Shown piece after piece: positions 3,313 to 64,000 of a DNA stretch of 64,000 nucleotides. The stretch comes from Thalia democratica. Taxonomy: Eukaryota. The stretch is taken from assembly GCA_965202585.1 (NCBI GenBank), contig OZ241833.1, forward strand, positions 27,528,001 through 27,592,000, given 5' to 3'. Each line of letters starts with the position of its first letter. Position 1 is the first letter of the stretch. The notes under the pieces are model-generated. The model was not told where the DNA came from. It searched no databases and saw nothing but the letters and a program-made list of their open reading frames with translations. Both the position numbers and the translations under genes were made by a program.

Positions 3313-4485
3313 GTGAAGTGTTTGGGCCAACTGTGAGACAGTATTACCCTCAACCAATAGGAGAAGAGATTTCCAGAGTCATTATGTACGATGGAACAGT
3401 CGTTAAAAATATGAAGGATGGTTCAACACAAGTCAGATTAATTTTTCTATATAAGTATCTAAATCTGGGTTTATTTTCAGTAATTAAATCTAAAAGAAAA
3501 TTTTATACTGACAAAATATATTTTAATTTAAAGAAAAAAACTACAATAAAGTTAACTTCTACTATTTAATCATAAAGGTATCATACCGGTGCTTGCACAA
3601 AAATTACTATGTATGTAAAATACGCATGGTAAAGTTGTTTATACTAAATACTTTTACATAAAAAAAACTTCATTTAAATTCGTAAACCTCTATTTTAAAG
3701 CATCAAAATGTTAAATATTTTATACTATATGTATATATATAATTTATTAGAAAAATAAGATTCTAAAAGTACTGGTACACGTGTTTCATAAGACTAGACG
3801 CCTTAGTCTTCAGCCAGCTAAATTTAAAATAAAAAGCACTTTGCTAAACATAGAAGCAAAAGTTTTACAAAAAAACAAAAAACATTATGACGTAATATTG
3901 TGAATTACAAGAATTCAGTACAAAAAATTACTGAAAGAAATTACTAAAGATTAAGGCGTCTAGTCTTATGAAACACGTTTACCAGTATTTTTAGAATCTT
4001 ATTTTTCTAATAAACTATTTAAAAGCCCTTCAAGTGGGCTCAGTAGAAGGTGTTTAAGTTTAAATAACAACTTTATTATATATATATATATAAAAGTTTA
4101 TTTCAAGATGTAAAACTCAAAGGACTCGAGTTTCGTGTCTATGCACTCATCAGCTTCAAAACAAGTTTAAAATAAAGTACAAAACAAAACACACAAATGA
4201 AAGTAAAAAAAATTAGCAATAAATTATGACGTAATTTGAAACTATCAAAAATCATGCAAAACGGCTTGTGCAAAAATTATTTTACCAATCGACAATAAAC
4301 TGGCAAAAATTCATAAAACTTCATTGAGTAAATACATATTACGACAGATAATTGAAAGAGATAAAGATAAAATTAAGGTACAAATTGAAATTTAGATTAT
4401 TCTAAGATGAAATTAAAACTTGTTAAACTTTTAAAGCGTTTTTTTTATGTCTACAAGACGATACAAACTCGCTTCTTTTATTTAT

Positions 4486-4516
<31 letters not shown>

Positions 4517-7500
4517 AATTCATATTTCAACTGTTTATATTAAATATGCTACCAAAAAACAAAATTTATCTAACTTATTCATTCTCTATAAGAACCTAAA
4601 ATCACTTAAACCTGAAAACATTTTATGTACAGATTTTATGTTTGGACAGAACAGTTCACACAGCAGGTTTCGATGAAGGTAATTTCCCTAAAGACGACCA
4701 AAACACCCCAAATTCCCCAAGTTATGTTGGGGACAGTTACAAAAAGAGTGAGTTTAAGTTATATGTTTCTGAATAAGAATTCTATTTATCTCTTAGTAAA
4801 AATTTAAGCAGGATAAGCTTGATAAGTTCAAAATCTAAAGATTTTAACCAGGTTCTTAAAGCAACACAGAGCTTTAAAAAAATTATTATCATCGATGCTT
4901 CTGACTATTGTTTCGTCGCTATTTGCAGCAATTATTAAACAAAAAATAATGTTTAGCAAATGAATTTTAAAAAGACAATTATAAGAAGTAGTAAATTTTT
5001 ATATACATTACTAAAAGAACATAAATCTATTTATTTTTAACTATTAAAACAACAAAAATACAAAAGCCAAAGTTTTAGTATTAACTTATTATTTTAAATT
5101 TTACTGTGATATTAACTTAAAGTAAATCACAAAATATTTCGTTTATCAAGTTTAACGCCGAATTATAAACTCAAGAACGCTGTTGTCAACAGAGTTAAGA
5201 GTTAATCTTTAAAGAATTACTTCAAAACTTTTCTTTGCTGCAATCACCCCTTTTCATCGCCACTCGAAAATCTTTCACTGCAACTAATTTTCTCACGACA
5301 GACTCTGTGGTGCAAGGGGGCGTTGTGAAAGGAGGAAATGGGAGAAAATCCAACGCAAAGGAGGAGAAAAGGGCCTCCAACTCGCACCGGAATCCAGCAA
5401 TTTACCTCCAACCATCTGATATTTATAAGTTTATAAAACTGTTTATATATTAAAAAATTGGCAAACTTTAAGTGCTAAAACATTTATAAAATCTTTGCAA
5501 CAATACATAAAAACTTGTAACTAATTCTGCATGTTTCACTTTTTGGTTGTAAACTAAAAATATACTATATACCCATTAAATTTTGGAAACCCTCAGTTTT
5601 TCTTGATTTAATGTATTTGAATTTAAAGCTCATAATAAATTATAGGATGTTTTAAAAGAAAAGAATTTCTCTTAAATATAGTAGTAATTTCAATTAAAAA
5701 TAGAATAATGAAATGCTTTACATTTTCTACTGATACGTTGTCTTTTTATTCTAACTAATTAACCAATCACAGATTGGATAATGGAGATCATACGGACCAA
5801 TTGTGGCAGACTACGTCAATATGCGGTGACGTCAGCATCACGTGCCATAACAAACCTTCTCAGCCAATCACCAAGCGAGTTTGCTACGTCGCCAAGGACC
5901 CAATCACTAGAGAGGTGAGTTTGAAAAATAAAAGCAAAATTTTGTTTTATTTAAAAACAAGATTAGGTAAAACAATATTTTATATTTCCTAAAGATGGCA
6001 GTAAAAAATTCAAACAGCAATACTCATTTAGTTTCTAGATTAAATATTCAAACTAAACTATATCAAATTAAAATGTTTTTTTTAGGAAAAAAGAAAGGTT
6101 TTTAATATTAAATCGAGCGGCACTAATCCCAGCTGATTGATCCTTTTCTCTTATTTCAAACAAAATCTTGTTTGCAGTAAACAAATAGTTTATGCAAATC
6201 CTATGAAGTTCATTAAAATTGACATTAATTTTAATTGCTTTGTCTGCTTTATTCATGCGTTAAAGTGCATTAAATTGCATTTGAACTGCTTTAATTTTGT
6301 CTTCAATTTCTAAGATAAAGTTTCATACCCGGTTTAATTGACTTGTAATTCCATTTTACTATCTTGTAAGTTTTCTATTGACATTTTAATTATTTCAAAT
6401 TGTCAAAATATCCTGTATTTCAAGTTAGCAATTTTTTAACTTTAAACTGTTTAACCTGTTTTTATTATCAATATATTTTACAGCGTATAAATCATTTTTC
6501 TTCAATTTAACAAACTTTATAAATTTGAAAAGTACTAAAAAGAAGTTTTTTATAACAAGTAGATTTTCGTGTTCTTTTAACTACTTGCGGGTCAATATTT
6601 ACTTGTTTAATTTTTATCAACTTGGGGTGAATAACACAAGGGGTCAGCAAACCATCAATCACGTGACTGTTTGAGCGTAACCAATCACATCGATTCAATC
6701 TTCCGACAAACACAAATTGCGTCAAAAAAAAAGTTGATCGGTTTCGCAATTGGTGTCAGCTCGCTAATTCAATTTGCTTTTTTAGCTGCCGTGAGAAAAA
6801 ATCCCCTTTAAATCCAATTTGTGTGTGGCGATTCGATTTCACGGCGTGACGTAAAAATGTGACGTCACAACTAGCAGATGCGCGATTCCCACCAGCAGCC
6901 TGTCAACTTTCACACACATGAAAGGATTTAAAAGGGGATTTCCCTTCCATCAAAAGATTTTGCGCATGTTGGGGTGAATTTAAGATGACCCTTGAAATGT
7001 TTGCGCGTCTTTTGTCATCGCCGCCCTCAATCCAAACACTAGAACCTGACTTAAGCCACTTTTTATATTATAAGCCACGTTTTTTGTTTTATTTTCCGAA
7101 TAGTGTTTTTGTGATGCCGTCGAGCTAAACTTTAATCTATCATCATAAACGCGCTCATGTATGAGCTAGAATGAGCTTAAAAGCTGCATTTTGGTTGATT
7201 GGTTGAAGTCACTGATGTGTGACGAACCAATTGACGGTGATTGGCCAATTTCAAAGTGACAATATCATGCCAAAAGTTATAATGCCCAGGTGCAATTTTT
7301 CTATTTGCAAGCGAAAATATTAACTGATGTAAAAATATCACAACTATTTCAAGTAGCTTGTTGTGATTTTCAAAGGGTTGTCAAGTGTGAGCTATAAAAA
7401 TTTCATAATAATGTATAGATAGTTTGAGTTTTCTTTTGCAATTTAAATAAATAAAAAGCTAGTTGCATTTTATTGGGTAATAAAGTTATAAGTATTCTTG

Positions 7501-10500
7501 CGCAGAATTGGATATGTGAAACGAAAATGTTTGTGATTGATAAATTTGAATGTTTGCATACAAACAAAAAGTTATGATTTATTTTTAATTTTAAATATAA
7601 TTAGTTGCTTTGAATATGTTTCTCTACTTTCAATTTGTTTAGTTACTTTGTGCTTAAAATTTCAAAACAATCTAAAAGAATTAACATGGAGTAAACATTA
7701 CCAACTTTATAAAAGCAAAAGTTTGACTATTTATTTTTTAAGAAACAATTGTGTAACAATTTATAAATATTAAGTTTAATAAATTAAAAATCTTACTTAT
7801 ACACTTCGTCTTATAAGCTGCTGTTAAAGACATTACTTAGAAACTTTTATAAAAAATGTTAATAAACTTGTTTACTAATTAATTTAATGAAAGATATAGA
7901 AAACTTTGTAATAATTTTTTAAACATTTTTAGTTTTTAAGTGTGTAAATATTGTTCGTTTATATTATAATATATATTGTACAAGTATATTTGTAAGTGTA
8001 GATATCTTTGTTTTAATGAACTATTATTATTGTTTTTAACTTGAAATTTGTCTTAATACAACGCCAGAACAATAAAAATTTTCAAACATAAAGTAAAGTT
8101 CAAGCACTGAAAAATTTCCTTCTTGAAAAGCTGTTAACTAAGCTTGGAGTCTAGCTTAAATAAATTTAAAGATTTAAAAATATATTATGTAAATAAAACT
8201 ATATTTCCTTACATAACTTTTTTTTACTTATGTATACAGTTTTTTTATTCTGTTTCTAAATTTAAAATACTAAGACTGTTAAGCTAATTATTTTAAAAGT
8301 TTTTTTTCTATTTCATCAAGACGTTATAAAATTATAACTTATTATATTTTCCCAGGTAATGTACAGTTTAGAGGACAGTACAGTTCTGGTTGAAAGACCT
8401 GACGGTGGACTGGTTTGTGACCACGAAGACGGAACCAGAATAACCAAATTTTTCACCTACGACCAATTCGGTTAGAATTTTTTAAATATTTTATTTCTAA
8501 GGTATTTTTTGTTTTAAGCATTTTTTAAAACAAACTGTTTTACAAGGTTAAGTATAAAATAAAGTTTCTGAATACTAATTTTATGTGTTTTTACAGGCCA
8601 CATAGTATGGCTGGTTCGAGTTGAATGTGAAGGATTTGCCACTGTCACATTCGATCTGACAAATGGCGAGTCCATGACCTTATTTGGAAGTGGTACAACT
8701 CTGTCCATGTCTCAGGATCAGGACTACAAGGTTTAAATGGTTTTAAATAGTTTTCTTTTAATTAAAAGAAACTAGTTCTGCTATTATTTAGGCGTGTGAG
8801 TTTACTTATAACTGTTTTAATATTTTTCCTTGTTTTTACAAAAGCTCAAGTTCAGAAAAATTAGTAGAAAGCAACTAAATTTATTTAAAATAAAAGCACC
8901 AAAGTTATATTTTTATTTTCCACCAAATACTTTTCCAACATCAAATATTAAATAAACAATCAAACAAAAGTTGTTTATTAAAATTAAACCCAATCAACAA
9001 CAGCTGTCGCATTGGACGGGGGGAATCTTCGTGCTTTCCCGCGGCGGCACCGCCCTCTACCGACCTGCCCCCGAAACCCCACCGACCAGGAAGCGATCGG
9101 ACACGGACATCAGCAGGGAGAACGTCGGAGGTGAGGAGAACTTCTCAGGCGAGGAGGAGCAGGTCACTTATTTGTTACGTCACAATGACCCCGTCTGCTT
9201 CGAAATGAGCTACTTCGACGGCAACGTTTTTCAGGTTCAAGTTTTGTTTTTTTATAATTTATTTATTTTTGTATCACTTTAAAGTTTTTAAAACATTTAC
9301 ACATTGTCAAGTAATTTTTATAAACACGAAAAAAGTATCCACTTTTTCTCGAGCTAAACAACTTTCTCCCCACAGATCAGGAACAACAGGTGTGTGACGT
9401 CATACAACGCGCATCAGGGCTGCGTGGAGGAATATGAAGACGAGGAGGGGGAAAACCCTACAATGAATATCGAGGGTCAGCAAAAGTACCTGAAAAAATA
9501 CTCAAAACACCCGCCCAGGTGAAAATATGTGAACATTGGTTTGACTTATTTTAGAAAGATAAGTAGAGGTTTTTAATCAAAACTGTAAAAATGTAAGGCG
9601 AATCTATTTTTCATTTACTAAACAATTTGTTAAGTTTTTTACAACATTTATATTTTCTTATTTTCAAAATATTTGCTTTAAAAATCCATAAATGAAAACT
9701 TAAATGTTACTACTACCTTTATGCCGAAGTCAAAAACAGGCTTAATAAAATTTAGTTTCCTAGGACAAAATAATGAACCAGAATTTGCTTTTCTGCTGAA
9801 TAGGATTAAAAATTCTTAATTCAGTTTTGTTATGCCGTTAAAATTCATGCTGCGTAGATGAATTAAATATGCAAGTGTTTTTGTTCTTTGTGGGAATATT
9901 TTAAATTAGTGTTTCATAAGTAATCAACTGCTACAAGAAAGAAAAATTAAACATCTTTAAATAAATTTTAACGCGGCGCAACATTATATAAAATTTATTT
10001 CATGGTTGTAAAGTCATCATCAAAAGTAATTTATTATCAGTAGTTTAAAACGTTTCCTTGAAAATTTATTAAACATTGTTTAAATACATTTTAAATTTTG
10101 TAATAGTTCGTTTAAAGTTTGAATAAATGTTTCTTTTTTTCGTTCAATAGAGAAAACATATTTTTGTAACATATTTTTCTCATAAATTTGTAGTTTTGTC
10201 CACAGAATTTGCTAACTAAATGAACAAAAATAAATAAACTTAAAATATCAAATTAGAATATGTGAAACTAAAAGTTTAAAGTTGTGTACTCTAAAATAAA
10301 CAAACTAAAGTGCTTATTCTTTTTTTGCAGATTATTTGTAGTCAAGAATGACGGAAGCGGATACGAATTGTTACGTCATAGTGACGTCAAACCTTCCATA
10401 CAGGCTGCCGAATTGGACCAGTTCACTGCTGTTGTCAAGGACCAGTTGCTAGGTGACACAACCGCAGTTGGTACGTTGCACTCGTACATCAATTGCTAAA

Positions 10501-13500
10501 TTAATAAAGTTTTATTTTAGTTGTTTGTTACAGTTATATACTTTTATACTTGGTTTCTTACAAAGAGCGTTGTTGTATTGTAGTTTGCTTAAGCTTTTGA
10601 CTGGTTTATTTTATATTTAAGTATAAACAAATCTAGACCACTGGTTCAAAAACTTTATTATTGTGGACAGTAAACTACTTAAAAAAATTATGTGAATACT
10701 AGATAGATTAGTATAGGTTTTATGACCAAAAAAATATTAAGGCTGTCTTTATCATGTATAAATGCTTATTGAAAACATTCAAAAGTTAACTTTTCAACAA
10801 AAATTAGTATATGTTGTAACTAGTTTTTTTAGAAATATTACTACCCTCAAAATTTATGTGCAAAGTAAATTAGTTTCAACTACTACAGTACAAGGGTACA
10901 CTTTAGAAAATACTACAAGAGAAAGCATAATCCGTTTTTTTAATTTATTTTAGTATTACCAAGATAAAAATATTAATTCAAGACAGCAAAAAACAATTTT
11001 TTCAGGGTTGACAATAATGCGACCTCATCACAACGATCTCGGGCAAGTTTGGAAGTTGGACAAAATAGAAAGCGAAATAATCCCGCCAAATATCAGATCA
11101 CGTGACCTGCAAACCTACGACTTCTGGTTGGTTGTTTGTTTGAAGAGTTTCGTAAGAAAAAATGGTTGTTGTAACAATTTATTTTTATTTAAACTTGTAA
11201 AAAAATACGCATGCAAAGTTTTTCTAAACTAATAAAATAGAAACAGTGTACTATGTGTCTATCCTTTTCAGGAAGCCAGTCAGTGAAAAAATCTTCCAAT
11301 TCGGCCACAAAAAGGGCAGAGGACTAGCAATTGGGTCGTTGGAGCCGCCAAAACCCACACCAATGGCCCCAACTTGTCCCGATACATTGGAAGTGCGCCA
11401 ATTGGTCAGGCATCCGGAAATTTCAAACGGTAAGAAAATATCTGCAACAAAAATAATGCTTTAAAAGTTGTATTTTCTCATTTTAATCATCTTGGATTTT
11501 GACCTTTAAATTTTTAACACCTTTCACTTTCGGTTTTTGAATATATATGTGTCAATAATCTCTTAGCTGAAAGTAATGAAGTATCAACGGCTTTTTGTTT
11601 GTACTGAGATAAGTTTCAGTGCTCGACAAACATTTCCAATTGTGATTTGTTTACAATTTGCAGCTAAAATAAGTTTTGTCACCTGCCGTTGATTGCTTTG
11701 TAAATTTTCTAAACAAAACTTTTTTTGTGCTTAATTTCCTTTAATGCGCTTAAACAGACAATAAAATGTGCTTTATCAAACCTACTTGAGTTTTTTCAAT
11801 AAGAAATTTGTTGTTCCTTTCCAAGTTTTTATAAACAAGTTTAACTATGACTTAGCTATTTTTTAGGCTTGCTTTACATACCATTGAAGTTTAAATCATT
11901 TTAACAACTTATTAAATATTAAAGACAAAAGCATTTTTTATAAATTAGAATATCTAAAAAACGTCTTATAATTTTATTGTAAAAACACAAGTCAGGCCTA
12001 TTTAACGAAATACTAACGTTCAACATAAACTATTAAAATTAAGTAAAAAATAAGTACAGTTTCTATTTCATTTATGTATTTGAAATTTTTTGTTTTTCTA
12101 GTTATTCTATTAGTTTTCATACAAAGTTCATATTTTGATTCGTTTTATTTTTTTTAACCGTTATAGTGTAACACAAAAACAAATTTTATACAAAAATTTT
12201 CAACACAGAAACGCGTTCGATGCTTCAGAAGAGGTTCCTGGAGTTTGTGAGGAAGTTGTCGCGTGAGGAGATCCACAGGAAGCTGATGCAGATGGAAGAT
12301 CCGAGGGAGGAGGGAGAAGTAAGGAGGGCGGAGGATCTTCTTACCTTACTCCTCCACTACGACGACAATGTCAAAATGTTGTCTGTACGTTTATCAGTAA
12401 TATTTATTTATAGCAAATACAGGTGTTTGAGAAAGTTAGACAATTTATTGTTTAAAACATAATTTATAGTTGTCTAACATTGTTTTTTTAATATCTATTA
12501 TAACTTTTATCTTACAAAATCTGCAATGGCCGAATCATGCATCCAACTTATACGCATTGTCTAATGACACGTTTAATCGTCGACAATTCTTCTCTTTATC
12601 AAATGCAAACAACTTTCATATTTTAACTTGAATCAACAATTGAGGCCATTGTCATGTCTCTACAAAAAGTGAATCTTTTTTGATGGATTTAAAGTATCGA
12701 AATCCCATCTTTTGTCCATTTCATTGCCCATCAGTGATAGATCAAATATTTGTTTAGTCATTTGCATTTGAGCCTGGCAATAAAAAGTGGCGAAAAGTGG
12801 CAAGTGTTTGTTTTACGACACGAAATTGTTTTGTTTTCGCCGCCTAAGTGCTTTTTGTTTGGTCAGCAGTAAAGTTTGTTGGTTGGAAATTTGGGTTTTG
12901 TTTACAAACGAAAGCTTTTAATTCATCTGCTCAGCCGAAATTTAACCTGCCATTTTCTCTTACGATTAAACAAAAGTTTGTGCTTTTAAAGTCGTAAAAA
13001 ATAATTAACGTTTTTATGTCAGTCTACTTCATAGGAAGCAATTACTTAACGTTAAAGGGTGACAAATTACTTAAAAAAATTCGCTTCTTTTTTGACTCAC
13101 TATACATACATTTATTGATATAAAACTAAATTATTTAAAGATAATGCAAAACTTCTTCAACATCCAACGTAAGTGTTGCAAACTTTTTTCAGCCCCACAA
13201 GGACAGCAATGCCCCGATCGACCGCGAAGAAGAAATAGTTCCGACGAATGTTCAACCGCTAGGCGACGTTGTTTGCATGAAGCACAATTACGAGAAGGCG
13301 CTTTCACCCGAAAAACCCCCGACTCCGAGAAGGGCGTCGATTAATCTGACCAGGGAAGATTGGGATCAGATCAGAGAGGAGCTGCTGGAAGAAAGCTGCA
13401 ACAGGAACGCTCTCAGGTCGGAAAAAACAAATTATTTCAAATCTTAATTGTATGAACATGTTAAATATTTCGTTCATTGTGTTTTGGGCTCTTTTAAGGA

Positions 13501-16500
13501 AGTTAATATGTTATTTTTTATGCTGAGCGCTTTTAACTGATGTTTTTGTTCTTATCATAAAACATTCATCCAGTTTCCTTAAACTGTTTTATTCTGTTTT
13601 TTATTAATACATATAATATAGGGAAAAATTTAATAGAATAAACCATACAACCAGATATTTTAACGGTATTTTCAAAGCCATAAATATATGCTCATTTAGT
13701 GTCACAGTTGTTTGATCAGATAATTTTTTTTTTTACTTTCTAAAAACACCACATTTGTTATTATGACGTCACTATTTATTAACAGATACAAGAAAGTGCC
13801 AACGTACTTTCAGAGTGAGGAGGGCAGAGAGTGGTTACGGACGCAAACGGAGTTGCTCAACGAAGCCAGCAAGCGGCTGAAACCGCGGCAACAGATGAGC
13901 GTGTTGCTAGGCAACAACGACGAGAAGGTGTACGTGGGGAAGCACCCCATCGACAAGATGAACGTCACCAGTAACGGTAATGTGACGTCACTTTAAAGAA
14001 TTTCTTATTTTGAAGTTTTTTGTTTTTTTTTTATTATAAGTAAGATGTTTTAGCTTCTAATAACATTTAATTAAACAGCTGCAAGAGTAAAAACAATAAA
14101 AATTTTCTACTAATTTAAATTTTCTACTAACTTAAAACTGTAATTCTACTCTTAAAATAGACTTTTTATGTAAAGGTGAGTAGGTAGTATAACATATTTT
14201 ATTTGTGGAAAAACAGTTCAGCAAGTCTTAATGTTTATTGGTTTGTTTAAAAAAAAGGCAAAAATATAAAAGTTTGTATTTGTCTTTATTCCCTAATATA
14301 ACTTTAATTTTGTGTTTAAAATGTTATAACGTTATGTAAAAAATTGTTTGTTTCAAAACTAAAGCTTGCAAGTACTGAAGAAAAGTAAATTTTATTTGAA
14401 TTTTTAAGAGCTTAAACACTAAAGTATTAGTTTGAGTTGTCAAGTATTTTCAGAATATACTTTTATTTTTTAATATAATTGTTTCAGTTTTAATAATGCA
14501 AATAATTGTTAACTTTTAACGTTAATACTGATTTAATTGAAAAAGTAACCCTCAGTATATTGAAAGCATGAAATTTTGCCAAAATATTTGACCTCAAGTT
14601 AAACAGATGTTTTTTCCTTTTAAAAAATATCAGCACAACTTTAATTAACTTGCTCATATTGCTAGTTTTCTCGGGAAGCTTGCCAAAAATAAGTTCAAAA
14701 TGCCACAAACTTTCCAATTACTTTTGTATCACTAGTAGTTTCGCTTGAAGTTCAATTTTTTTTTTCTAAGCTGTTTATTATGTGAATGAACTTTTAATTG
14801 AATTGATGAATATGACGAACTAAAAACATTTTACTCAATAAAACGTACTAAAATGTATTTTTAACTTATAAACACAGCATTCTAAGCATATTTACTTTAT
14901 TTAAAAGACTAATAAAATAAGTGTATTAAATTTAAAACAACAAATTTATTATTACTAGTTAGTAAGTTAATGAAATTTTTGATAAATTATAAAAAATATG
15001 TGTTATAAAACTTTAGAGGAATCAATACTAGAAGTTAATGAACTGAGAAGAAAAAGTATGGCAGCAAAAGAAGAAAAATTACAGCGTAATTCAGGTGATT
15101 TTTATTTAAAAAATAAACATTTTACTATTACCTTTTTCCTACTAATAATTTTTGTATTTCACAGTTAATGCACAACAAAAGTCAATTTTGCAACAGATTA
15201 ATGAATCAGTATCCACTGATAATGAAAGTAAGTTACATTTATTTGTTTACAAATTGTTTTGAGACATTTAACTACAAATAAAAAGGTGTAATAATATCAC
15301 TTTTTGTTTTTAACCTTTACAAGAAAAAAAAGTTGTTTAAACACAATATTGTTTTAATATTAATCGTTTATATTAAATTTTTAACTCAATCATGCATAAG
15401 CTAAATTTTTTTAGTTTTATATGTTTAATAAATAAAATTACATGTATGCGGTTTTTAAATCAACTTCTATTTTAAACTTATTTTATAAAAGTAGAGCAAA
15501 TTAGATTATGACTTTATAAATTCAAATAGTATATCCCTTTTCGATACAAATAGTTTTATATGCAATTATATTACCGAGCAAGACCATTTTAAATTTATTC
15601 ACAAATTTGTTCGTTTTATCAAAAACCTCACAGCGAATTTTATCAAACCTTCCAAATCGATGGGAAAATTAAGAAGCATTTTGCTTTGCTGCGATGGAAA
15701 AAGTTAATCAATTTTTCGTAACATTTGCTGAATTAAAAGCACATTTTATTGATTATATTCCGCCTCTGTTTGCGTGCTATAAGGTAAATCGCAAATTTGT
15801 ATGGATTTTATAAACATTATAAAGCAGGCTTCTTATTGTATAAGTATGATATTTATTCGAGCCGATCAAAAATCAATAGAATTAATAAGCATCTCTTACA
15901 AATCTTACGTTTACTTGTTTTCTATCCTTTATTTGCATGTAGATTTCACGGTATTTACTTATTTAGTTTAATATGTAAATGTTTTAAAAAGCTACTGAAT
16001 AAATATAAGATATATTGTGTCTTAAAAACATAAACATTTTATTTGTAGTACTACTTTTTAACTAAATAGATTCGTTAAATATGCAAATTCTACCCTTAAT
16101 AAATAAGTATAAAGTATTTAATTTAAACTTAATTATTGAATTACTTTTACCTTTAAATAATTCGTTATATAAATTGCTTTCTATACTAAATGTAAGTTAA
16201 AACGTTTTTTTTTCAACTAATTTAATTTATCTATTTACAGAACCTTATAAAGAAAATGGTGAAGTTTTATCAAATCAAGCTACAAATGGATCTACAAAAC
16301 AAAGAGGTTAAAAATATGTTGATAGTTTTTAAACTTCCTTTGAAAATACTTAATTATTAGCACATTCTAATGATTGTAATCAAAGTTAATAATACCTTTG
16401 ACTTTTGTACGTTTTTTAGACGTAGCCTTTATTAATCTTACTAAAGTTAGATTTAATTTCCTAAAAAAATAAAAAGAACTAAAAAGTTAATGTTAAAAAG

Positions 16501-18617: not shown

Positions 18618-18703
18618 CTAAGTTGGTTCAACTGTAGTTTTTTTATGACTCGTGTTGTCACTGATAGTTCCAAACGCTTTATCGATTAATTTTACAGTTT
18701 CAG

Positions 18704-18750
18704 GTTTAAGCTGTGGACCCATCAATCAGAAAAATGTTAGACAAAAATGA
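18704..18750 (+). CDS. Putative terminal exon 23 of module A (G-LSCGPINQKNVRQK*)
   Basis: Conserved block behind a tttcag acceptor in all three full units (B 37801-37838, C 57094-57140). It is in frame if exon 22 is spliced at TCT G|G(C/T)GAT. The donor is GT only in copy C. Confidence 0.45.
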
Positions 18751-18823: not shown

Positions 18824-18857
18824 AATAAACTCTTTACTGTGTTTTTTATGTAATAAA
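18824..18857 (+). terminator. Polyadenylation signals of module A (two AATAAA in a short ~28-bp duplication)
   Basis: AATAAA at 18824-18829 and 18852-18857 amid TG/T-rich tracts, ~200 nt after the exon-22 stop. Confidence 0.5.
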
Positions 18858-21800: not shown

Positions 21801-23133
21801 TTGTTATTTTTTCATATCTGTTTAAAACAATATAACAATTGATTAAATTCGATAAAACTTCTACAAAATTATAATAATCAATTTTAAAACTGTTTACTTA
21901 ATTTACTTTACCAAATTTTTACAATTTGCATCGAATAATAAATTTATTTAATTGATTAAAAGTTTTTCATAAACTAGAATTTGTATAAAAATTTTAATTT
22001 TACAAATTTATAATGAAACATCCTGTTCAGTAATTGGGTTAAAAATTCGATTCAGCAAGCTTCAAAGGCCGCACTTGACTTTAACTTCCATTCTTAATAC
22101 GCGAGCCACTTAAAAACAATTTTAAATTAATGAGAAACACGCAAGTTTATTGCGAGCAATTAAATTCTGGCTGATTATATGAAAACAAAGTTGTGAATGA
22201 CGCAAGATAAAAGGTGAGAAATTTTCACTTTGATCACAAGTTTGCACCAAAAGCTCTGTATGCTTTCTTAATATAGTTTTGTTAAGGTTTATGAAAGTTT
22301 TGAAGCCAAATCCTCGTGTTTTGAGCACAAGTTTTTACTAAAAGGGGGAAAGTTGTTATTGTTGTTCGCTGGTTCATTGCTTGCCCCACTTGATAGTTCA
22401 ACAACCCTTCATTTTTTGTGAAGGCTGAAGTTGTCTGCCTCAAGTCGAGTGTAATTAGCAGCAACTTGCTTTGTTCAAATCTACCAAGTGTTTAAAGCTG
22501 CACTTAAATAAAGCAGCTAAGAATATATTTGATTTTTGGCTGAATGAATCTTGTGTGCTTGAGTCAAGCTTTGCAAGTTGAGAAATTCAATTAATGTTTG
22601 AAAATATTATTAGTCATTTTTTTTTACTTTAATAATTGTTTTGAAACAATGTCTTTAAGATATTATTAGGTTTTGAAAAAATAACATGTTTAATAAAAGT
22701 TTCAGTCTTTTTAGATATTGACTTATATTATTCTAGATATTTTAAATTTACTATTTGAGTTGATTTTCAACTTCAAACTAATTATATACTTGTCCTAAGG
22801 ATTGGTTTGTAAACAAAATGCGCATGTTAAGTTTATGTGTACTAAATGTTCAAATACAAATAAAACAAAATAATTTATTTAGTAAACTAATTAATCTTCA
22901 TGAAATGATTAAAAGCAGAACAACCTACTTATAGTTTATGTTTTGAAATGAATACCTTACTTTAATAATAAGTATAGTCTAATTTTAAACAGTTTGAAAT
23001 GTTTAGTAAAAATTAATAATAACCTCGATTTCTCATAACCTTTTGTTCTGTTATTAATTGTTTCTTATAATATATATCTTATTTATAAACTTCACCAAAC
23101 ATACTTGTATCTAACTTGACAATTTTACGATAG

Positions 23134-51400: not shown

Positions 51401-54400
51401 AAGTCGTAAAAAATAATGAAAGTTTTTGTGTCAGTCTACTTGATAGGAAGCATTTACATAACGTTAAAGGGTGACGATTTACTTTAAAAATGCGCTTCTT
51501 TTTTGACTCACTATACATACATTTAATGATATAAAACTAAATTATTTAAAGATAATGCAAAACTTCTTCTACATCCAACGTAAGTGTTGCAAAATTTTTT
51601 CAGCCCCACAAGGACAGCAATGCCCCGATCGACCGCGAAGAAGAAATAATTCCGACGAATGTTCAACCGCTAGGCGACGTCGTTTGCATGAAGCACAATT
51701 ACGAAAAGGCCCTTTCACCCGAAAAACCCCCGACTCCGAGAAGAGCGTCGGTCAATCTGACCAGGGAAGATTGGGATCAGATCAGGGAGGAGCTGCTGGA
51801 AGAAAGCTGCAACAGGAACGCTCTCAGGTCGGAAAAAAACAAATTGTTTTAAATCTAAATTCTATGTACATGTGAAATATTTCGTTCATTGTGTTTTGGG
51901 CTCTTGTAAGGAAGTTCCTACGTTATTTTTTATGCTGAGCATTTTAAACTGATCCTATTTTTGTAATTGTAAAATTGAAGTTAACAGCTATTTTCCTAAA
52001 GTATTTTATTCAATTTTTTATTAATTCATATATTATGGAGAAAAATTTAATAGTATACACCATACAACTAGATATTCTAACAATATTTTCAAAGCCATAA
52101 AAAATTGATTATTTAGTGTCCCAGTTGTTTGACCAAACAGAAAATATTTTCTTAGCTTTCTAAAAACCTTTTTTGTAATTATGACGTCACTATTTATTAA
52201 CAGGTACAAGAAAGTGCCGACGTACTTTCAGAGTGAGGAGGGTAGAGAGTGGTTACGGACGCAAACGGAGTTGCTCAACGAAGCCAGCAAGCGGCTGAAA
52301 CCGCGGCAACAGATGAGCGTGTTGCTAGGCAACAACGACGAGAAGGTGTACGTGGGGAAGCACCCCATCGACAAGATGAACGTCACCAGTAATGGTAATG
52401 TGACGTCATATTAAAGAGTTCTGTAAAAATTAGTTTGAAGTTTTTTGAATTTATGTATTTAATTAGATTAGCTTTTAATAATAACCCTTAATTAAACAAC
52501 TGCAAGAGAAAAAACATTAAAAATTTTCTACTTATCTAAAACTGTAATTCTACTCTTTTAATAGACTTATTCAGTAAAAGTGAGTAAGTAGTATAACATA
52601 TTTTCTTTGTGAAAAAACAATTTAGTAAGTCTTAATTTTTTTTAATTTGTTTTAAAAAGAGGTAAAACTTTATTTTTTTATTTAACTATATATTTTGTGT
52701 TTGGAGTTTGATAAACGTAATGTTGAAAGTTCATTGTTTCAATAACTAAAGCTTGCAAACTAAACAAAACTAAATTTAGTTTGAAATATTTAGAAAGCTT
52801 AAACAATAAAGTATGAGTTGTCAAGTACTTTCAGAACAGTACTTTTCTATAAAAAGATAATTGTTTTATTTTTAATAGTTGCAAATAATTGTTAACTTTT
52901 AACGTTAATACTGATTTAATTGAAAAAGTAACCCCAGTATATTGAAAGCATGAAATTGTGCCAAAATATTTGACCTCAACTTAAACAGATGTTTTTTCCT
53001 TTTAAAAAATATCAGCACAACTTTAATTAACTTGCTCATATTGCTAGTTTTCTCGGGAAGCTTGCCAAAACTAAGTTTAAAATGCCACAAACTTTCTATT
53101 TACTTTTGTATCACTATTAGTTTCGCTTTTAGTTTAAGGTTAACTTTTTTCCAAACTGTTTATTGTGTGATTGAGCTTTTAATTGAATCAATGATAAAAA
53201 CGAATTATAAATGTTTTACTTCTAAAAAGCGCACTGAAATATTTTTTTAAGTTTAAACACAGCTTCCTAAAAATGTTTACTTTGTTTAAAAGACTAACAA
53301 AATAAAGGTATTATATTTTAAACTACAAACTTATTATAAATAGTTAGTAAGTTAATCAAACTTTTGATAAATTATGAAAAACATGTGTAATAAAACTTTA
53401 GAGGAATCAATACTAGAAGTTAATGAACTGAGAAGAAAAAGTATGGCAGCAAAAGAAGAAAAATTACAGCGTAATTCAGGTGATTTATATTTGGAATTTT
53501 AACATTTTAGTATTATTTTTTGTTTATTATTTATTTTATATTTTGCAGCTAATGCACAACAAAAGTCAATTTTGCAACAAATTAATGAATCAGTATCCAC
53601 TGATAATGAAAGTAAGTTACATTTATTTGTTTACAAATTGTTTTGAGACTAACAGTTAAAAATAAAAATATGTGTTAATAAAACTTTTTGTTTTTATCAG
53701 CCTTTGCAAGAAAAAAAAAGTTGTTTAAACGCAATATTGTTTCATTAATAATAGTTTACATTAAATTTCAACTAAAACATACATAAACTGAAATGCTATA
53801 GTTTTATATGTTTAATAAATAAGTGTACTTCCAAGTATGCGGTTTTTAGATCAACTTCTATTTTAAACTAGGAAATTAGATCACGACTTTATTAATTCAT
53901 ATAATGTATCCCTTTTCAATACAGCTAGTTTTATAATTTCATTACCGAACAAGAGCATTTTAATTTACTCACAAAATCGTTCGTTTTATCAAAAGCCTGA
54001 AAGCGAATTTTATCAAAGCTTCCAAATCGATGCGAAAATTAAGAAGCATTTTGCTTTGCTGCGATGGAAAAAGTTAATCAATTTTTCGTAACATTTGCTA
54101 AATTAAAAGCACATTTTATCGATTATATTCCGCCGCTGTTTGCGTGCTATAAGGTTAATGGCAAAATTGTATGAATTTTTATATATATTACAAAGCAGGC
54201 TTCTTATCGTATAAGTATGATATTTATTCGAGCCGATCAAAAATCAATAGAATTAACAATAATCTCTTACAAATCTTAAGTTTACTTATTTTCTATTCTT
54301 TATTTGCATGTAGATTTCACGGTATTTATCATTTAATTCTATATGTATATGTTTCAAAAAGCTACTGAATAAATATAAGATATATTGTGTCTTAAAAACA

Positions 54401-57007
54401 TAAACATTTTGTTTGCGATACTACATTTTTAACTATATGTATTCGTTTTATATGTGAATTCTACCCTTAATAAACAAGTATATGGTTTTTAAATTAAACT
54501 TAATTATGTAATTATTTTAACCTTAATAATATTTTGTTATATAAATTGCCTTCTATACTAAATGTAAGATAAAACGTTGTTTTTTTTTAACTAATTTAAT
54601 TTAATTTATTGACAGAACCTTATAAAGAAAATGGTGAAGTTTTATCAAATCAAGCTACAAATGGATCTACAAAGCAAATAGGTTGAAAATATTTGATAGT
54701 TTTTAAACTTCCTTTGAAAATATATAGATATTAGCACATTCCAATGATTGTAATCAAAGTTAATAATACCTTTGACGTTTGTACGTTTTTTAGACGTAGC
54801 CTTTATTAATCTTACTAAAATTATATTTAATTTCCTAAAATAATAAAAACAAATAAAAAGTTAATGTTACAAAGTACCGAATTTTTAAATACAAAAGTTT
54901 GATAGTTCAATACAATTTAGTTTATGAAAAACAAAATATTTAGATAATAGTTGAGATATTAATCACACAAGTTTTGTATTTTAAAACAGTTTTTAATTTA
55001 AATTTAATTCTGAACTCAAGTTGTGAAATAGAGATCATAAGTAAACTAGTATAAATTTTTAAGGATTAAAAGGATTCATAAAAAAAGATAATAGAATCAA
55101 AAACTATCTACAAAAAATTTTAAAAATTCAAGTTTAAGCTACCAAAAATGAAAACAAAACAAAAATTTTCATATGTTCAGACTCAACATTCATTAATTCG
55201 AACGTCGAAGAAAACTTCCCAGAAAACAAAAATCCCTCTCCGCCATTGGAAACCGACGCGTTGCCTGACAACGACGACGAGTGGAAGCAGCGGCGCTTCG
55301 ACGTCATGAGCTGGCCCAATGACGTCATCGGTCCCCGCAGGAGCAGGCACCCGGTGGCGCCCCCCATCGGCCGCCAAACGCAGGCGAGGCCCATCGACAG
55401 CGACGAGCACATTTTGAGGGATTTCTACCGGCAGCGGCGCCCCGGAGAAGTAAAGATGAATAAAACGGAAGTGGTGGTGCAGAAAGGCGGCAAAGTTAAA
55501 GGGGAGAAAGGCGTGAGTGACGTCATAATGCAGTCGCTGCTCGCTTTCAAGCCCAACGCAGTGCCCAATACTAAGGTTTGTTGTGACGTCATAACTAATT
55601 TAAACATTTGTTTATTTTTGTTGTTTCATTTTAGTACATAGAAATAGAAGAGCCGGTAAGAAAGCAGGCGAACAATGTGTCCATAGCAGGACCAATAAGC
55701 AAGGGAAACATGAAAGTTATGAAAAGAGGAGTAGAACTTCATCCTAGACAAGTAATGTTTTAGTTCAAATTAAAACTAGTTGGTCAAGATTTTTTTTTAT
55801 TTAATGAAGTTTTGTAACAATTTTTTTAAATCTAATACATTTCAACTTAAAACTAATTAATCTTTAGTTTTTCCCAGAATTTAAGATAGATTACCATCTA
55901 GATTCTAGAAGTAAACGTTTTTCTGGATATATTTACCTTAGCATGTTTTATTTTATTTTAAATAGACATAACAAAGATAGTTTGACAAACTTATGGACTA
56001 TGAAGTAGTAAATAAAAGTTTGTTTTTGTTTCAGTTGAATCTGGGAAAATTGGTGGAAGGTAAGATGTATTGCTGCACGTTCAGGATTCGAAATGTTGGC
56101 ATCGATACCATCAAATACCGAATAAAATCCCCTCCAGTCAACACTGGAATCCGAATCAGATACGCTCCTAAAAAAGTTGGTTTCATTCAATTGTCGCAAG
56201 TTTTTGTAAACAACTTTTTGTTATGTATTTTCTGCAATCGGATAATTATAGATAAAATTTAATAGTAGTAGTAAAATATGAACAGAACGTAACAAATAGC
56301 TTTTTTAAATAGAACATTTTTCCCTTTTATTTTTTTAATTTTATTTGTTAGATGATTTAAGTTTTAAAGATTTGAAATAACATTCACGGCTGTATATGTT
56401 AAAGTCTGATAAGTTTTTACCGTATGTATACAGCTTGTTATCGCACAAGTCGTCAAGTTAAGTATAAATTCTTTTTGAATATCAATAAAAGTGTTCTTAT
56501 TTTTAAAACAAAAACTTTTAAAGATACCAGCCGGTTTGGAGCAGAAAGTAACGATAGACATTTGTGCGATTGCACCGAATGTGCTAGTTGGAGATATTGT
56601 TGGAAGTTTGAACTATCAGCTTCAAATTATTGCTGAAACTGAAATTATTCACCTCCCGATTCGAGCCACTATTCTTCTATGTAGTTCATTTTATTATTTA
56701 TAGTTATCTTACAAATCAGGAGTTCTTTGTTCTTCAAAAACTTTGTATTATCGTTGTTTTTATAGTTGTGTTTTATTTAAGTTGACTTTAAAACCTTGAC
56801 TACCTATGCATACTTTATACATGAAGTTATTTTAAATTTTGCAGTTTAAATAAAAAAATCAATAATAATGCACTAATTAGTTCTAATATTTTAATTATAA
56901 CAGCAAACGCGTACAACACCATTGAAAATGAAGAGGAAAAGTGTGCAGTTGTCAAATTTAATTCAAATGTTGATGTCAAGTCTTGTGTTTCTGGTGATTT
57001 GGTGTAA
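42476..57007 (+). CDS. SPAG17: SPAG17/PF6-like C-terminal half (module C; 22 exons)
   Basis: Exons 42476-42594, 42977-43091, 43646-43772, 44114-44255, 46784-46898, 47024-47157, 47415-47645, 47794-47936, 48643-48782, 49310-49430, 49578-49735, 50486-50661, 51604-51827, 52204-52394, 53402-53479, 53549-53611, 54616-54681, 55181-55575, 55635-55751, 56035-56175, 56524-56680, 56904-57007. Lengths and phases are the same as in A and B, and the frame is open. Confidence 0.87.
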
Positions 57008-57213
57008 CTAAGTTGGTTCAACTGTAGTTTTTTTATGACTTGTATTTTTATAGATATTTACAAACGCTTTATCGATTAATTTAACAGTTTCAGGTTTAAG
57101 CTTTGGACCCATCAATCAGAAAAATGTTTTACAAAAATGATGAAAAAGCAAAATGTTTGTTCTTATTCACTGTGTTTTTATCTTACTGTTATTTTTCACT
57201 GTGTTTTTTAAGT

Positions 57214-57219
57214 AATAAA
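57214..57219 (+). terminator. Polyadenylation signal of module C
   Basis: AATAAA at the homologous position, followed by a CTGTGTTTTGG tract. Confidence 0.45.
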
Positions 57220-58706: not shown

Positions 58707-61700
58707 TAGTATATCCTTGCTAGAAGGCTATTTTTTATAACATTTTACAGTCTATAGATTGTTCAATATTCATTGTTCGGTTATTCTAACAAAATTTTAT
58801 GTAATATACTTAAACCATCTACATCAAGTTAGATTCTTAGGTTAATTGGCTTTTACAAAAGAAAAGATTTATTAAAACTTCGCTCAGTAGTTCCTTGATT
58901 ATTGTACTTAAAAGTATATCTATTAAATGTTAAGTACGACTTAGAAATATTTGTTTAGTTACCAACTGCGTTAAACTCAATTAGGTTAAATTATGGTTTT
59001 ATAGTTTTTCGAAATTTGTAGGTTATAAAATCTATATGTTCACTCGATAAGAATTTTTAGTTAAACATAAGTAATACAGAGTTCTATAATTTTTAAGATA
59101 GTAAAAAAAACATGATTTAGTCTGTAATTTAAAATATTTTATTACTTTCTTTTTTTTTTCCTAAAAACTTACTAAATTAAATTTGTTTTTATCTGCACGA
59201 AGAATTTATTTTCTCATTGATTTTTTTTTAATTATAACAAAATTATTGTATGTATATACATTTACACATGAACTTTTAAAGCGTACCAAATTTCATAATA
59301 CACTGTTTACACAACTACATTTAGTAAAAATTATATTTTTTAATAAAAATGATAATCCTATTTTTTATTTCAAAAGCTAAATTAGATTTAAAGCAGCCAG
59401 CTGAATGAAAATCTCGATACAGAAAAATTGTACTGAAAAATGAGAGAGGGTAAACTTTTTCTTTTGTTCTAATTCGAGATAATCATGACGTGCTGTTGTC
59501 TCGGTCGAAGCGATTTGTGAGCTCTCTGTAGTTTTCATTTCTGACCGTTTATTTTTGCTGCTATTTCGATTGACAGGCATACATTTCAAACGAACCGTTT
59601 CCTACCGAGGCACCTGCGATGTTTGAATGTTGGTGAAGCGTTCACCGTCAACTTTAAATAAAAAAACTCATTCAAGAGCGCAGTTGCGAATCATTAGTTG
59701 TCTTAGCACAAATAGATTTTTATGTAAATAAAGAATCTATCTTAAGACTGACGGTTGTAAAAATGACTATAAAACGTCGATTAAGCCGGACTGTAAAACG
59801 ACGTTTTCCTATAAATCGTATGTTTTTAATGCAGGCCTTAAAATAAACGGCAGCTAAATGCAAACTTTATTCACAAGGTAGTTTACTGACAGTTTATTTT
59901 GTTGACGAAATTTTTCCAGACTTCGTGCATTGTTCTCTTTTTATGACCTATCGATTAAATTGTAAAAGTTTTTTAGTTTTTTAATATATTTGAAATTTTA
60001 TATCATTTTATGCTTATAACAAAAAACCATATAGTAGCAAAAAATTAAAAATCTTTAAAAATAATTTAAAAAAGGATTTTTTAAAACACATAATAACTTG
60101 GTTTTGTTTTTTTCTTTTAAATCTCTTTAAAACTATATAACAATTGATTAATTTCGATAAAACTTCTACAAAATTGTAATTATCAATTTTTAAAACTGTT
60201 TACTTAATTTACTTTGCCAAATTTTTACAATTTGCATCGAAAAATAAATTTATTTAATTGATTAACAGTTTTTCATAAACTAGAATTTGTATAAAAATTT
60301 TAATTTATAAATGTATAATGAAACATCCTGTTCAGTAATTGGGTTAAAAATTCGATTCAGCAAGCTTCAAAGGCCGCACTTGACTTTCACTTCCATTCTT
60401 AATACGCGAGCCACTTAAAAACAATTTTAAATTAATGAGCAGCATGCAAGTTTATTGCGAGCAACTAAATCTGGCTACTTATATGAAAACAAAATTGTGA
60501 ATGACGCAAGATAAAAGGTGAGAAATTTTCACTTTGATCACAAATTTGCACTACAAGCTCTGTATGCTTTCTTAATACAGTTTTGTTAAGGTTTATGAAA
60601 TTTTTCGAGCCAAATCCTCGTGTTTTGAGCACAAGTTTTTATTAAATGGGGGAAAGTTGTTATTGTTGTTCGCTGGTTCATTGCTTGCCCCACTTGATAG
60701 TTCAACAACCCTTCATTTTTGTGAAGGCTGAAGTTGTCTGCCTCAAGTCGAGTGTAATTAGCAGCAACTTGCTTTGTTCAAATCTACCAAATGTTTAAAA
60801 CTGCACTTAAACAAAGCAGCTAAGAATATATTTTATTTTTTGCTGAATGAATCTTGTGTGCTTGAGTCAAGCTTTGCAAGTTGAGAAATTCAATTAGTGT
60901 TTGAAAAAATGATTAGTAATTTTTTTTTTTACTTTACTAATTGTTTTAAAACAATGTCTTTAAGATATTATTAGGTTTTAAAAAAATAACATGTTTAATA
61001 AAAGTTTCAGTCTTTTTGGATATTTACTTATATTATTTTAGATATTTTAAATTTACTATTTGAGTTGATTTTCAACTTCAAACTAATTATATACTTGTCC
61101 TAAGGATTGATTTGTAAACAAAATGCGCATGTTAAGTTTATGTGTACTAAATGTTCAAACACAACTAAAACAAAATATTTTATTTAGTAAACTAATTAAT
61201 CTTCATGAAATGATTAAAAGCAGAACAACCTACTTATAGTTTATGTTTTGAAATGATTACCTTACTTTAATAATAAGTATAGTCTAATTTTAAACAGTTT
61301 GACATGTTTAGTAAAAATTGATAATAACCTCGTTTTCTCATAACCTTTTGTTCTGTTATTAATTGTTTCTTATAATATATATATTATTTATAAACTTCAC
61401 TAAACATACTTGTATCTAACTTGACAATTTTACGATAGGTGAAGTATTTGGGCCAACTGTGAGACAGTATTACCCTCAACCAATAGGAGAAGAGATTTCC
61501 AGAGTCATTATGTACGATGGAACAGTAGTGAAAAATATGAAGGATGGTTCAACACAAGTCAGATTAAATTATATATATATATATTTAATCTGGTTTTAGT
61601 TTTAGTAATGAGTCGATTTTTTTTTTTAATATTGACAAAACATATTTTTACTTAAAGAAAAACAACTATAATAAAGTTAATTTCTACAATTTAATTATAA

Positions 61701-64000
61701 AAATTCTTATATATATAAAACACGCATGGTAAAGTTGTTTATACTAAAAAATTTTACAAAAAAATACTTTATCTAAGTTCTTAAACCTCTTTTTCAAAGC
61801 ATCAAAATGTTAAATATTTTGTAATAATATATATGCATTTAAATATTTCTACTGTTTACATTAAATATGAAACCATAAACCAAGTTTTATCTGACTTAAT
61901 TAATCTTCATATGATCACTTAAACCTGAAAACATTTATGTACAGGTTTTATGTTTGGACGGAACAGTTCACACAGCAGGTTTCGATGAAGGTAATTACCC
62001 TAAAGACGACCAAAACACCCCTAATTCCCCAAGTTATGTTGGGGACAGTTACAAAAAGAGTGAGTATAACTTATATGTTTCTGAATTAGAATTCTATTTA
62101 TCTCTTAGTAAAAGTTAAAGCAGGATTAGATTGGTGAGCTCAAAATTTAAACAGTTTAACCAGGTTCATATTAAAGGCAACACAGAGCTTTAAATAAGTT
62201 GTTATCATCGATGTTTCTGACTATTGTTTCGTCGTTATTTGCAGCAACTATTAAAGCAAAAATAATATTTAGAAATAAATTTTAAAATAAAACCATACAT
62301 AGTGACATACTATCGATATAAATTACTAAAACAACTTGAATTTATTTATTTTTTACTAGTAAAATCACAGAAAAAAAGCCTAAGTATAAGTACTAATTCA
62401 TTATATTAAAGTTACTGGGAAATCAACTTAAAATAAATCATAAAAATTTTCATTTATCAAGTTTAACGCCAAATTAAAAACTCAATAGCGGTATTGTCAA
62501 AAGAGTTAAGAGTTAATCGTTAAAGAATTATTTCAAAACTTTTCTTTGTTGCTATCACCCCTTTTCATCGCCACTCGAAAATCTTTCATCGCAATTAATT
62601 TTCTCACGACAGACTCTGTGGTGCAAGGGGGCGTTGTGAAAGGAGGAAATGGGAGAAAATCCAACGCAAAGGAGGAGAAAAGGGCCTCCAACTCTCACCG
62701 AAATCCAGCAGTTTACCTCCAACCATCCGAAATTTACAAGTTTATAAAACTGTTAATTATAAAAAAAAATTACTAAACTATAAGTTCTAAAACATTTATA
62801 AAGTCTTTGCAACAATACATAAAAACTTGTAAGTAATTCTGCATGTTTCGCTTTTAAGTTGTAAACTAAAAATATATTAAAAACCCATTAAATTTCGGAA
62901 ACCCTCTGTTTTTCTTGAGTTAATTCATTTAACTTTAAAACTCATGAATGACAGGATGTTTTAAAAGAAAAGCAGTTTTTTTAGATATAGTAGTAATTTC
63001 AATCAAAAATAAAATAATGAAATACTTTACATTTTCTTCTGATACATTATCTTTTTATTCTAACTAATTAACCAATCACAGGTTGGATGGTGGAGATCAT
63101 ACGGACCAATTGTGGCAGACTACGTCAATATGCGGTGACGTCAGCATCACGTGCCACAACAAACCTTCTCAGCCAATCACCAAGCGAGTTTGCTACGTCG
63201 CCAAGGACCCAATCACTAGAGAGGTGAGTTTGAAAACAAAAGCAAAATTTATTTAGTTTTATTGACTTTTCATGACTAGATAAAACAATATTCTATATTT
63301 CCTAAAGATGGTAGTAAAATTCAAACATCAATACTCATTTAGTAAAATGTTTTTTGGAAAAAAGAAAAGGTTTTCAATATTAAATCGAGCGGCACTAATC
63401 CCAGCTGATTGATCCTTTTCTCTTATTTCAAACAAAATCTTGTTTGCAGTAAACAAATAGTTTATGCTAAAATCGCCATCTATTTTGCCGGTAATTACCT
63501 TCACTTTGCTAGCAATTGTTACCCCAAACAAGCTTACAAAAATCCTATGAAGTTCAACTGAAATTGACATTAATTTTAATTGCTTTTTTTGCTTTATTCA
63601 TGCGTTAAAGTGCATTAAATTGCATTTGAACTGCTTTAATTTTCTCTTCAATTTCTAAGATAAAGTTTCATACCCAGTTTAATTGACTTGTAATTCCATT
63701 TTAGTATCTTGTAAGTTTTCTATTGACAGTTTAATTATTTTAAATAGTCAAAATATCCTGTATTTCAACTTAGCAATTTTTTAACTTTAAACTGTTTAAC
63801 CTGTTTTTATTATCTATATATCTTACAATGTTTAAATCATTTTTCATCAATTTAACAAACTTTATAAATTTGAAAAATACTAAAAAGAAGTTTCTTAGAC
63901 CAATTAGATTTTCGTGTTCTTTTAACAACTTGCGGGTCAATATCACATATACTTGTTTCATTTTTATCAATATGGGTGAATCACACGAGGGGTCAGCAAA
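58707..64000 (+). repeat. Tandem segmental unit D (partial)
   Basis: Collinear with the first ~5.3 kb of unit B, up to the start of the intron-4 conserved block. Confidence 0.95.
61439..63223 (+). CDS. SPAG17: SPAG17/PF6-like C-terminal half (module D; first 4 exons, cut off by window end)
   Basis: Exons 61439-61557, 61945-62059, 62613-62739, 63082-63223 have the same lengths and phases as exons 1-4 of A-C. The window ends inside intron 4. Confidence 0.85.

Follow-up and report, generated by a model that had tools for sequence, protein, structure and literature searches.

A tandem row of putative SPAG17 3′ halves behind a single 5′ half in the genome of Thalia democratica

The window analysed here is a stretch of 64,000 nucleotides (C9:27528001-27592000) from the Thalia democratica assembly, which comprises 802 Mb with 28% G+C. 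It lies inside a head-to-tail array of long repeat units, each carrying a 22-exon coding module or what is left of one, and these modules are putative 3′ halves of the gene for SPAG17. SPAG17 and its Chlamydomonas counterpart PF6 are proteins of the C1a projection of the ciliary central pair. Upstream of the array, on the same strand, lies a candidate 5′ half of the same gene in a single copy.

The array and its modules

Self-comparison of the window by BLAST shows repeats arranged head to tail, one about every 19 kb. Flanking sequence was fetched as well (70 kb upstream and 80 kb downstream), and one unit was compared by BLAST with all 214 kb. On this part of the scaffold the array consists of six full units (U0-U5) and one old remnant (U6). 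The units are 18.4-22.7 kb long and their pairwise identity is mostly 84-97% per block, with a less similar stretch (about 78% identity) after the poly(A) site; U1 matches U2, U3 and U4 along its full length, mostly at 84-95% and again at about 78% after the poly(A) site. In the following lists negative positions and those above 64000 lie in the flanking sequence.

-17759..5, + strand: repeat unit U0, nearest to the 5′ half (BLAST)
6-20396, + strand: repeat unit U1, its origin chosen arbitrarily (self-BLAST, BLAST)
20397-39790, + strand: repeat unit U2 (self-BLAST, BLAST)
39791-58709, + strand: repeat unit U3 (self-BLAST, BLAST)
58710-77610 (58710-64000 inside the window), + strand: repeat unit U4 (BLAST)
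77611-100342: repeat unit U5 (BLAST)
100343..~110484: remnant U6, deleted and diverged (BLAST)

The exon chain of the module was obtained from a seven-way alignment of the units, in which short blocks of 95-99% identity rise above a background near 88%. Dynamic programming, requiring open frames and AG/GT sites conserved across units, gave a chain that was then pruned and adjusted by codon-position bias and phase, whereby the acceptors of exons 3 and 13 were shifted. Composition or conservation alone predicted too many exons. Two candidates (6985-7104 and 12788-12899) were dropped because they show no third-position bias, contain stops in some units and are not needed for phase. The resulting module has 22 exons, 3,272 nucleotides and 1,089 codons plus the stop, which corrects an earlier estimate of about 1,085 amino acids. 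Its exon 1 starts at a phase-1 acceptor, AG followed by GT GAA GTN TTT GGG (3313 in U1).

3313..18617, + strand: module of U1, 22 exons, intact (model, third-position bias, RNA contig for the last seven exons)
3313-3431, 4633-4747, 5302-5440, 5773-5914, 8356-8470, 8597-8730, 9004-9240, + strand: exons 1-7 of U1
9376-9518, 10331-10470, 11006-11133, 11276-11429, 12209-12384, 13193-13416, 13786-13970, + strand: exons 8-14 of U1
15017-15094, 15165-15227, 16241-16306, 16791-17185, 17245-17361, 17643-17783, 18123-18279, 18514-18617, + strand: exons 15-22 of U1
17643..18279, + strand: exons 20-21 of U1, coding for the PapD-like (ASH) domain common to SPAG17 and PF6
18824..18857, + strand: two AATAAA poly(A) signals of U1
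23134..37714, + strand: module of U2, 22 exons (23134-23252 ... 37611-37714), intact; AATAAA at 37946
42476..57007, + strand: module of U3, 22 exons (42476-42594 ... 56904-57007), intact; AATAAA at 57214 and 57251
61439..63223, + strand: exons 1-4 of the module of U4; the remaining 18 exons lie past the window, where the module stays intact as far as its stop (window coordinate 75919)

An initial annotation made from the window had described four head-to-tail units, each beginning at an internal phase-1 acceptor and the full ones running through 22 exons to a stop and AATAAA of their own. The tandem arrangement is real and the 22-exon model bears out both the acceptor and the exon chain, but the count was too low: extension beyond the window raises it to seven units on the scaffold, with more on two unplaced contigs. 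The end that it gave, 63223, is the end of exon 4 of U4. Its four units (U1-U4) are all intact: among them exon lengths, phases and AG/GT splice sites agree throughout, as had been claimed, and internal stops are absent; the distance from stop to AATAAA is 207-235 nucleotides in each unit. This uniformity does not hold for the flanking full units, which are damaged. U0 carries a TAA at codon 333 (exon 7), an AT donor at exon 7 and a GC donor at exon 14. Exon 7 comprises 237 nucleotides in phase 0/0, and its skipping in U0 would preserve the frame. U5 shows frameshifts of -1 and -14 nucleotides with many resulting stops and three lost splice sites, and in U6 most exons are gone.

The introns differ between units by many indels, in agreement with the initial annotation, which had also reported private transposon insertions. 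The insertion in intron 1 of U1 is shared with U5 (C9:27609320, 94% identical), the only other unit of the array that has it. A hammerhead claimed within this insertion was not recovered, as Rfam at its gathering threshold reported no family in window positions 1-23500.

3740..4480, no strand assigned: dispersed-repeat insertion in intron 1 of U1, a repeat with 3,418 first-look candidates genome-wide

Exons and introns contrast strongly in G+C, with up to 60-66% per 200 nucleotides in exons (e.g., exon 18, 16791-17185) against 20-27% in introns. The long antisense open frames over the large exons result from this enrichment.

A search of the whole assembly with two module exons returned the same scaffold copies and additional ones on the unplaced contigs C644 and C1438. 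Long stretches of both contigs show 84-93% identity to the scaffold units; they hold further diverged copies that duplicate no scaffold unit. C644:1-41353 contains a nearly intact unit followed by a U6-like remnant and the downstream flank, which matches the scaffold at about 93% identity; this contig has the appearance of the other haplotype, with a different unit content. C1438:1-19591 contains a unit with degenerate exons 1-4 and a TAA in exon 7 of the same kind as in U0. These arrangements suggest structural polymorphism of the array between haplotypes.

Relation to SPAG17 and the single 5′ half

An exhaustive search of 1.8 billion proteins with the 131 amino acids of exon 18 returned one unrelated repeat protein and two fragments that share 95% identity with the query. 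One of the two fragments, P0002, is an open reading frame of 213 amino acids from the marine metatranscriptome contig L016 (JGI). P0002 aligns with mouse SPAG17 (PDB 9ijj chain x, 2,320 amino acids) at residues 2133-2285 with an E value of 4.1e-22, and its second-best match is Chlamydomonas PF6 (E 0.06). It contains the flagellar PapD-like (ASH) domain PF14874 (E 9.4e-11, 42 bits against a cut-off of 27), to which exon 20 alone gives a weak match. The C-terminus of the modules thus matches SPAG17 and PF6, as the initial annotation had proposed. Contig L016 aligns to every unit over seven consecutive exons with the introns removed, mostly at 93-98% identity (87-92% in exon 17), and ends in poly(A) just after the AATAAA. 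It thus represents spliced mRNA from a close relative, in which the last seven exon junctions of the model are borne out.

Upstream of the array, open G+C-rich segments follow each other on the + strand from about -51 kb to -23.9 kb. One of them matches SPAG17 residues 210-258 (E 1.3e-5) and another gives a weak match to residues 337-397 (E 0.07) in the correct order. The 5′ half occupies the same strand as the modules, 24-51 kb before the start of the window, and a crude model assigns it about 1,000 codons. The exon with residues 210-258 and the candidate last 5′ exon (C9:27503789-27504124) are each present once in the assembly and upstream of the array, in agreement with the earlier view that the modules contain no N-terminal exons. 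In the same crude model the candidate last exon has outgoing phase 1, which is compatible with the phase-1 acceptor of exon 1. Since single-copy N-terminal exons lie upstream on the same strand and the C-terminus of the modules matches SPAG17, the locus appears to consist of a single SPAG17 5′ half and, behind it, the 3′ halves in a row. The sum of about 1,000 and 1,089 codons fits the known SPAG17 size of 2,200-2,300 amino acids. In other organisms SPAG17/PF6 is described as one gene, whereas here the putative last 22 exons are present at least seven times in tandem, four times intact, behind a single 5′ half.

Two neighbouring features were seen on this side of the array. A minus-strand gene with leucine-rich repeats (Pfam LRR_8, LRR_4; C9:27507760-27509246, window -20241..-18754) is situated in the interval of about 8 kb between the last 5′-half exon and U0 and has not been duplicated alongside the units; it is probably nested in the intron between the 5′ half and U0. 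Upstream of the SPAG17 5′ exons an open segment of 107 codons (window -56888..-56568, + strand) has no Pfam match and may be part of a neighbouring gene or the start of SPAG17.

Constraint and conversion among the copies

In the exons, the great majority of variable sites are at third codon positions. Among U0-U5 the pairwise ratio of nonsynonymous to synonymous divergence (dN/dS) is 0.07-0.17, with dS at 0.06-0.10. This synonymous divergence is near the intron divergence between units (K of 0.09-0.17), so the exons have not simply been homogenised. The changes private to single units number 8-22 synonymous against 4-9 nonsynonymous per unit, while the neutral expectation is 78% nonsynonymous, and the binomial P values of this bias range from 0.018 (U2) to 7e-11 (U5). 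The private changes of U0 and U5 are biased to synonymous ones despite the lesions, and because they still show constraint the lesions must be recent. In a neutral simulation, in which the coding sequence was mutated by the intron substitution spectrum, about 5-9 stops arose per copy and the probability of no stop was at most 0.002 per copy.

By these patterns each full unit has been constrained as coding sequence on its own, and modules under selection are presumably modules in use. Decay as partial-duplicate pseudogenes is contradicted for U1-U4 by the low dN/dS and by the lack of stops and frameshifts. The earlier suggestion that the copies are kept rather than decaying is therefore well founded. 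The accompanying idea of a diversification system is weak, as the modules are 97-98% identical in protein.

Which two units are most alike varies by segment along the array, and units that elsewhere share about 90% identity have patches of 99.4-99.9%. In unit positions these patches are:

~6939-8385: high-identity patch of U2 and U4
~9862-10671 and 18957 onward: high-identity patches of U3 and U4
first 1.5 kb: high-identity patch of U4 and U5

Such patches are recent tracts of gene conversion or unequal crossover. Together with the insertion shared by U1 and U5, the shifting closest pairs indicate that unequal crossing-over and gene conversion have enlarged and rearranged the array.

How the modules could be expressed

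Each unit contains a non-coding block of 1.4 kb, situated about 1.1-2.5 kb upstream of exon 1 and conserved at 92-99%. Its core of 216 nucleotides deviates from the consensus by 1-3 bases in each of the seven units (98.6-99.5% identity).

785..2170, + strand: conserved block of U1, with the core at 785-1000 (unit alignment)
21166..22561, + strand: conserved block of U2
40527..41910, + strand: conserved block of U3
59477..60864, + strand: conserved block of U4

The block has 42% G+C in a surrounding of 20-27%, is rich in CpG (13 per 200 nucleotides, observed/expected 1.4) and, according to a genome search, is confined to the array units. It shows no 3-base periodicity of variable sites, no shared open reading frame and no Rfam or tRNA match, and a scan for an RFX X-box gave no clear one. 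By its appearance it is a candidate internal promoter, leader exon or 5′ leader. A second conserved non-exonic stretch was noted at window 6190-7400 (intron 4 of U1) and at the same place in every unit. It is conserved at 91-93%, above the other introns, has up to 14 CpG per 200 nucleotides and is array-specific, not a dispersed repeat.

In every unit the acceptor of exon 1 is preceded by no donor from the same unit, and organisms with trans-splicing normally add the spliced leader at acceptors of just this kind. The 16-nucleotide tunicate spliced leader of the Ciona type followed by GT occurs 358 times in the genome against 0 for the control. Four inspected copies have no common downstream RNA body or flanking sequence, so at least some of them are dispersed elements and not leader RNA genes. 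On the minus strand of C26 the 16-mer with GT recurs at 7129, 22214, 37299, 52384 and further positions with an exact spacing of 15,085 bases, and a second cluster is found on C4 near 80.16-80.42 Mb; both clusters may be tandem repeats carrying leader RNA genes. In U0-U5 exon 1 also offers a possible start, as its first ATG (Met24) lies in the reading frame of the module.

Several copies of the back half are probably expressed. Our preferred reading, held tentatively with a probability of about 0.45, is that the modules are autonomous genes for the C-terminal half, expressed by means of the CpG-rich upstream block and/or by spliced-leader trans-splicing at exon 1. Transcripts would originate at the block or close to it, roughly 2.4 kb before exon 1, or would continue from the preceding unit, and the donor-less acceptor of exon 1 would take the spliced leader. 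The modules are presumably translated; translation would proceed from Met24, the first AUG of exon 1. Full-length SPAG17 would be made by cis-splicing of the last 5′-half exon, with its candidate phase-1 donor, to the phase-1 acceptor of one module. The probable advantage would be a higher dose of the half that contains the PapD-like domain and, in Chlamydomonas PF6, the assembly function. The term headless, used for the modules in the initial annotation, is right in so far as they contain no N-terminal exons, but may overstate the case as the upstream block or a spliced leader could supply a 5′ end.

Short products of this gene have precedents. In mouse testis a smaller SPAG17 isoform of 97 kDa occurs beside the full-length protein (bioRxiv 10.1101/2020.04.08.031393), and it is attributed to a smaller splice variant by Zhang et al. 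2005, as cited in the same preprint. A mouse isoform containing the C-terminal part is mentioned in PMC7999657, which also reports, citing Goduti and Smith 2012, that PF6 truncations keeping the sub-C-terminal part rescue C1a assembly and motility in pf6. The mouse testis isoforms resemble the present case in that a product much shorter than full-length is made alongside it. They differ in that one gene yields them through alternative transcripts and processing, whereas here a candidate C-terminal-half unit has been amplified in the genome.

Several results weigh against the autonomous expression of SPAG17 C-terminal halves. The RNA evidence is confined to the 3′ end, and the searches of sequencing runs turned up no RNA from this species itself. 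The one RNA run found to hold module words, the small marine metatranscriptome X1, has RNA contigs on 18514-18841, i.e. on the last exon and 3′ untranslated region only (region examined 18450-24449). Two degenerate-pattern scans of metagenome contigs for exon 1 gave 0 matches, and neither X1 nor these scans contained RNA over exon 1, the block or a junction between leader and exon 1; in the genome no retrocopy with such a junction was found. The block is equally conserved in the dead U6 and identity falls sharply right after it. This drop fits a recombination breakpoint, and the conservation may thus partly reflect recombination. A short coding first exon within the block (ATG at 935, donor at 966, phase 1) was rejected, the GT being lost in U4 and U5. 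Finally, homology to SPAG17 is confined to the last ~155 amino acids of the module, and the remainder is assigned by position and length. Six single-exon phmmer searches of PDB with module exons gave no SPAG17 match, nor did Pfam with middle and large exons. PF6 and SPAG17 are themselves alike mainly in their C-terminal part (PMC7999657), and the missing homology in the middle of the module is for this reason weak evidence against membership in the SPAG17/PF6 family.

A more elaborate form of the preferred reading would make the array an operon-like row of C-terminal-half SPAG17 cistrons that serve also as alternative 3′ ends for the single 5′ half. The duplicated 3′ halves would have turned into working genes at once, as any acceptor lacking an upstream donor would be given a capped leader. 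We regard this as possible but doubtful. With the outrons and operons of spliced-leader tunicates the locus shares the presence of the leader in the genome and the module acceptor without an upstream donor of its own unit. In contrast with the very short gaps of tunicate operons, about 4.5 kb separate the poly(A) site from the next exon 1.

A different explanation treats the locus as one long gene with a single promoter, in which cis-splicing links the last 5′-half exon to the first exon of any one of several modules, and every choice gives a full-length SPAG17 with a slightly different C-terminal half. There are models for this, since lola and mod(mdg4) of Drosophila join arrays of alternative 3′ cassettes to common 5′ exons. 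Like these genes, the present locus combines one 5′ part with several 3′ parts that are lined up behind it on the same strand and end in a stop and poly(A) signal of their own, but the Drosophila cassettes are one or few exons long and encode different domains, whereas the modules here are 15 kb long, have 22 exons and are 97-98% identical. The single-copy 5′ half, the phase 1 shared by its candidate last exon and the acceptor of every module, and the selection on all modules would suit such a gene. The nearest module (U0) is broken in exon 7, which fits as well because an intact full-length protein then needs a more distant module or skipping of exon 7. A transcript extending to U1-U4, however, would need to pass one to four complete poly(A) sites without ending there, across a distance of 36-95 kb, and with proteins so alike there would be little to choose between. 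Pairing of docking and selector sequences as in Dscam is not indicated, for when the intron behind the 5′ half was compared with the regions preceding exon 1, reverse-complement matches were no better than the same-strand control. The CpG-rich block in each unit would be left unexplained. We therefore consider the single long gene rather unlikely.

It is improbable that a single module functions and the others are silent young duplicates kept healthy-looking by gene conversion. The mosaic patches of 99.4-99.9% between differing pairs do speak for ongoing conversion or unequal crossing-over, U0 and U5 carry lesions, and structural variants exist on the unplaced contigs. The private changes, however, post-date the last conversion and are strongly biased to synonymous ones in every unit, the exons are not specially homogenised in comparison with the introns, and four copies lack any stop, frameshift or splice loss in spite of the low neutral probability for each. 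An assembly artefact, in which haplotypes or pooled individuals were stitched in tandem at a locus that truly has one 3′ half, is very improbable. It would be compatible with the other arrangements of copies on C644 and C1438, with a haplotype divergence that seems high (the C644 flank being only about 93% identical to the scaffold) and with DNA runs that consist of short contigs, none of them spanning two units. Yet the seven units differ by 5-15% and by private indels and repeat insertions, which are too many copies for two haplotypes, the tail-to-head junction exists in six diverged versions, and up to 4-5 distinct variants occur at single places among the short contigs of two DNA samples with different labels.

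The novelty of the locus lies in a variant of known things, namely partial tandem duplication, short C-terminal isoforms and alternative 3′ cassettes. Partial duplicates without a 5′ end are expected to die, and here at least four back halves of 15 kb and 22 exons, from a conserved gene of cilia and sperm, are under purifying selection. This opens the question of whether spliced-leader trans-splicing or an internal promoter can turn headless duplicates into genes, and whether the C-terminal half of SPAG17, which has an assembly function in Chlamydomonas, acts alone in animals and gains from dose. Private amino-acid changes, 4-9 per unit, allow RNA and peptides to be traced to single units. If the array of leader-capped cistrons is true, it would be a natural case of a gene split into a single-copy and a multi-copy half. 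The locus is of interest both for the biology of cilia and for a possible rescue of headless duplicates by trans-splicing.

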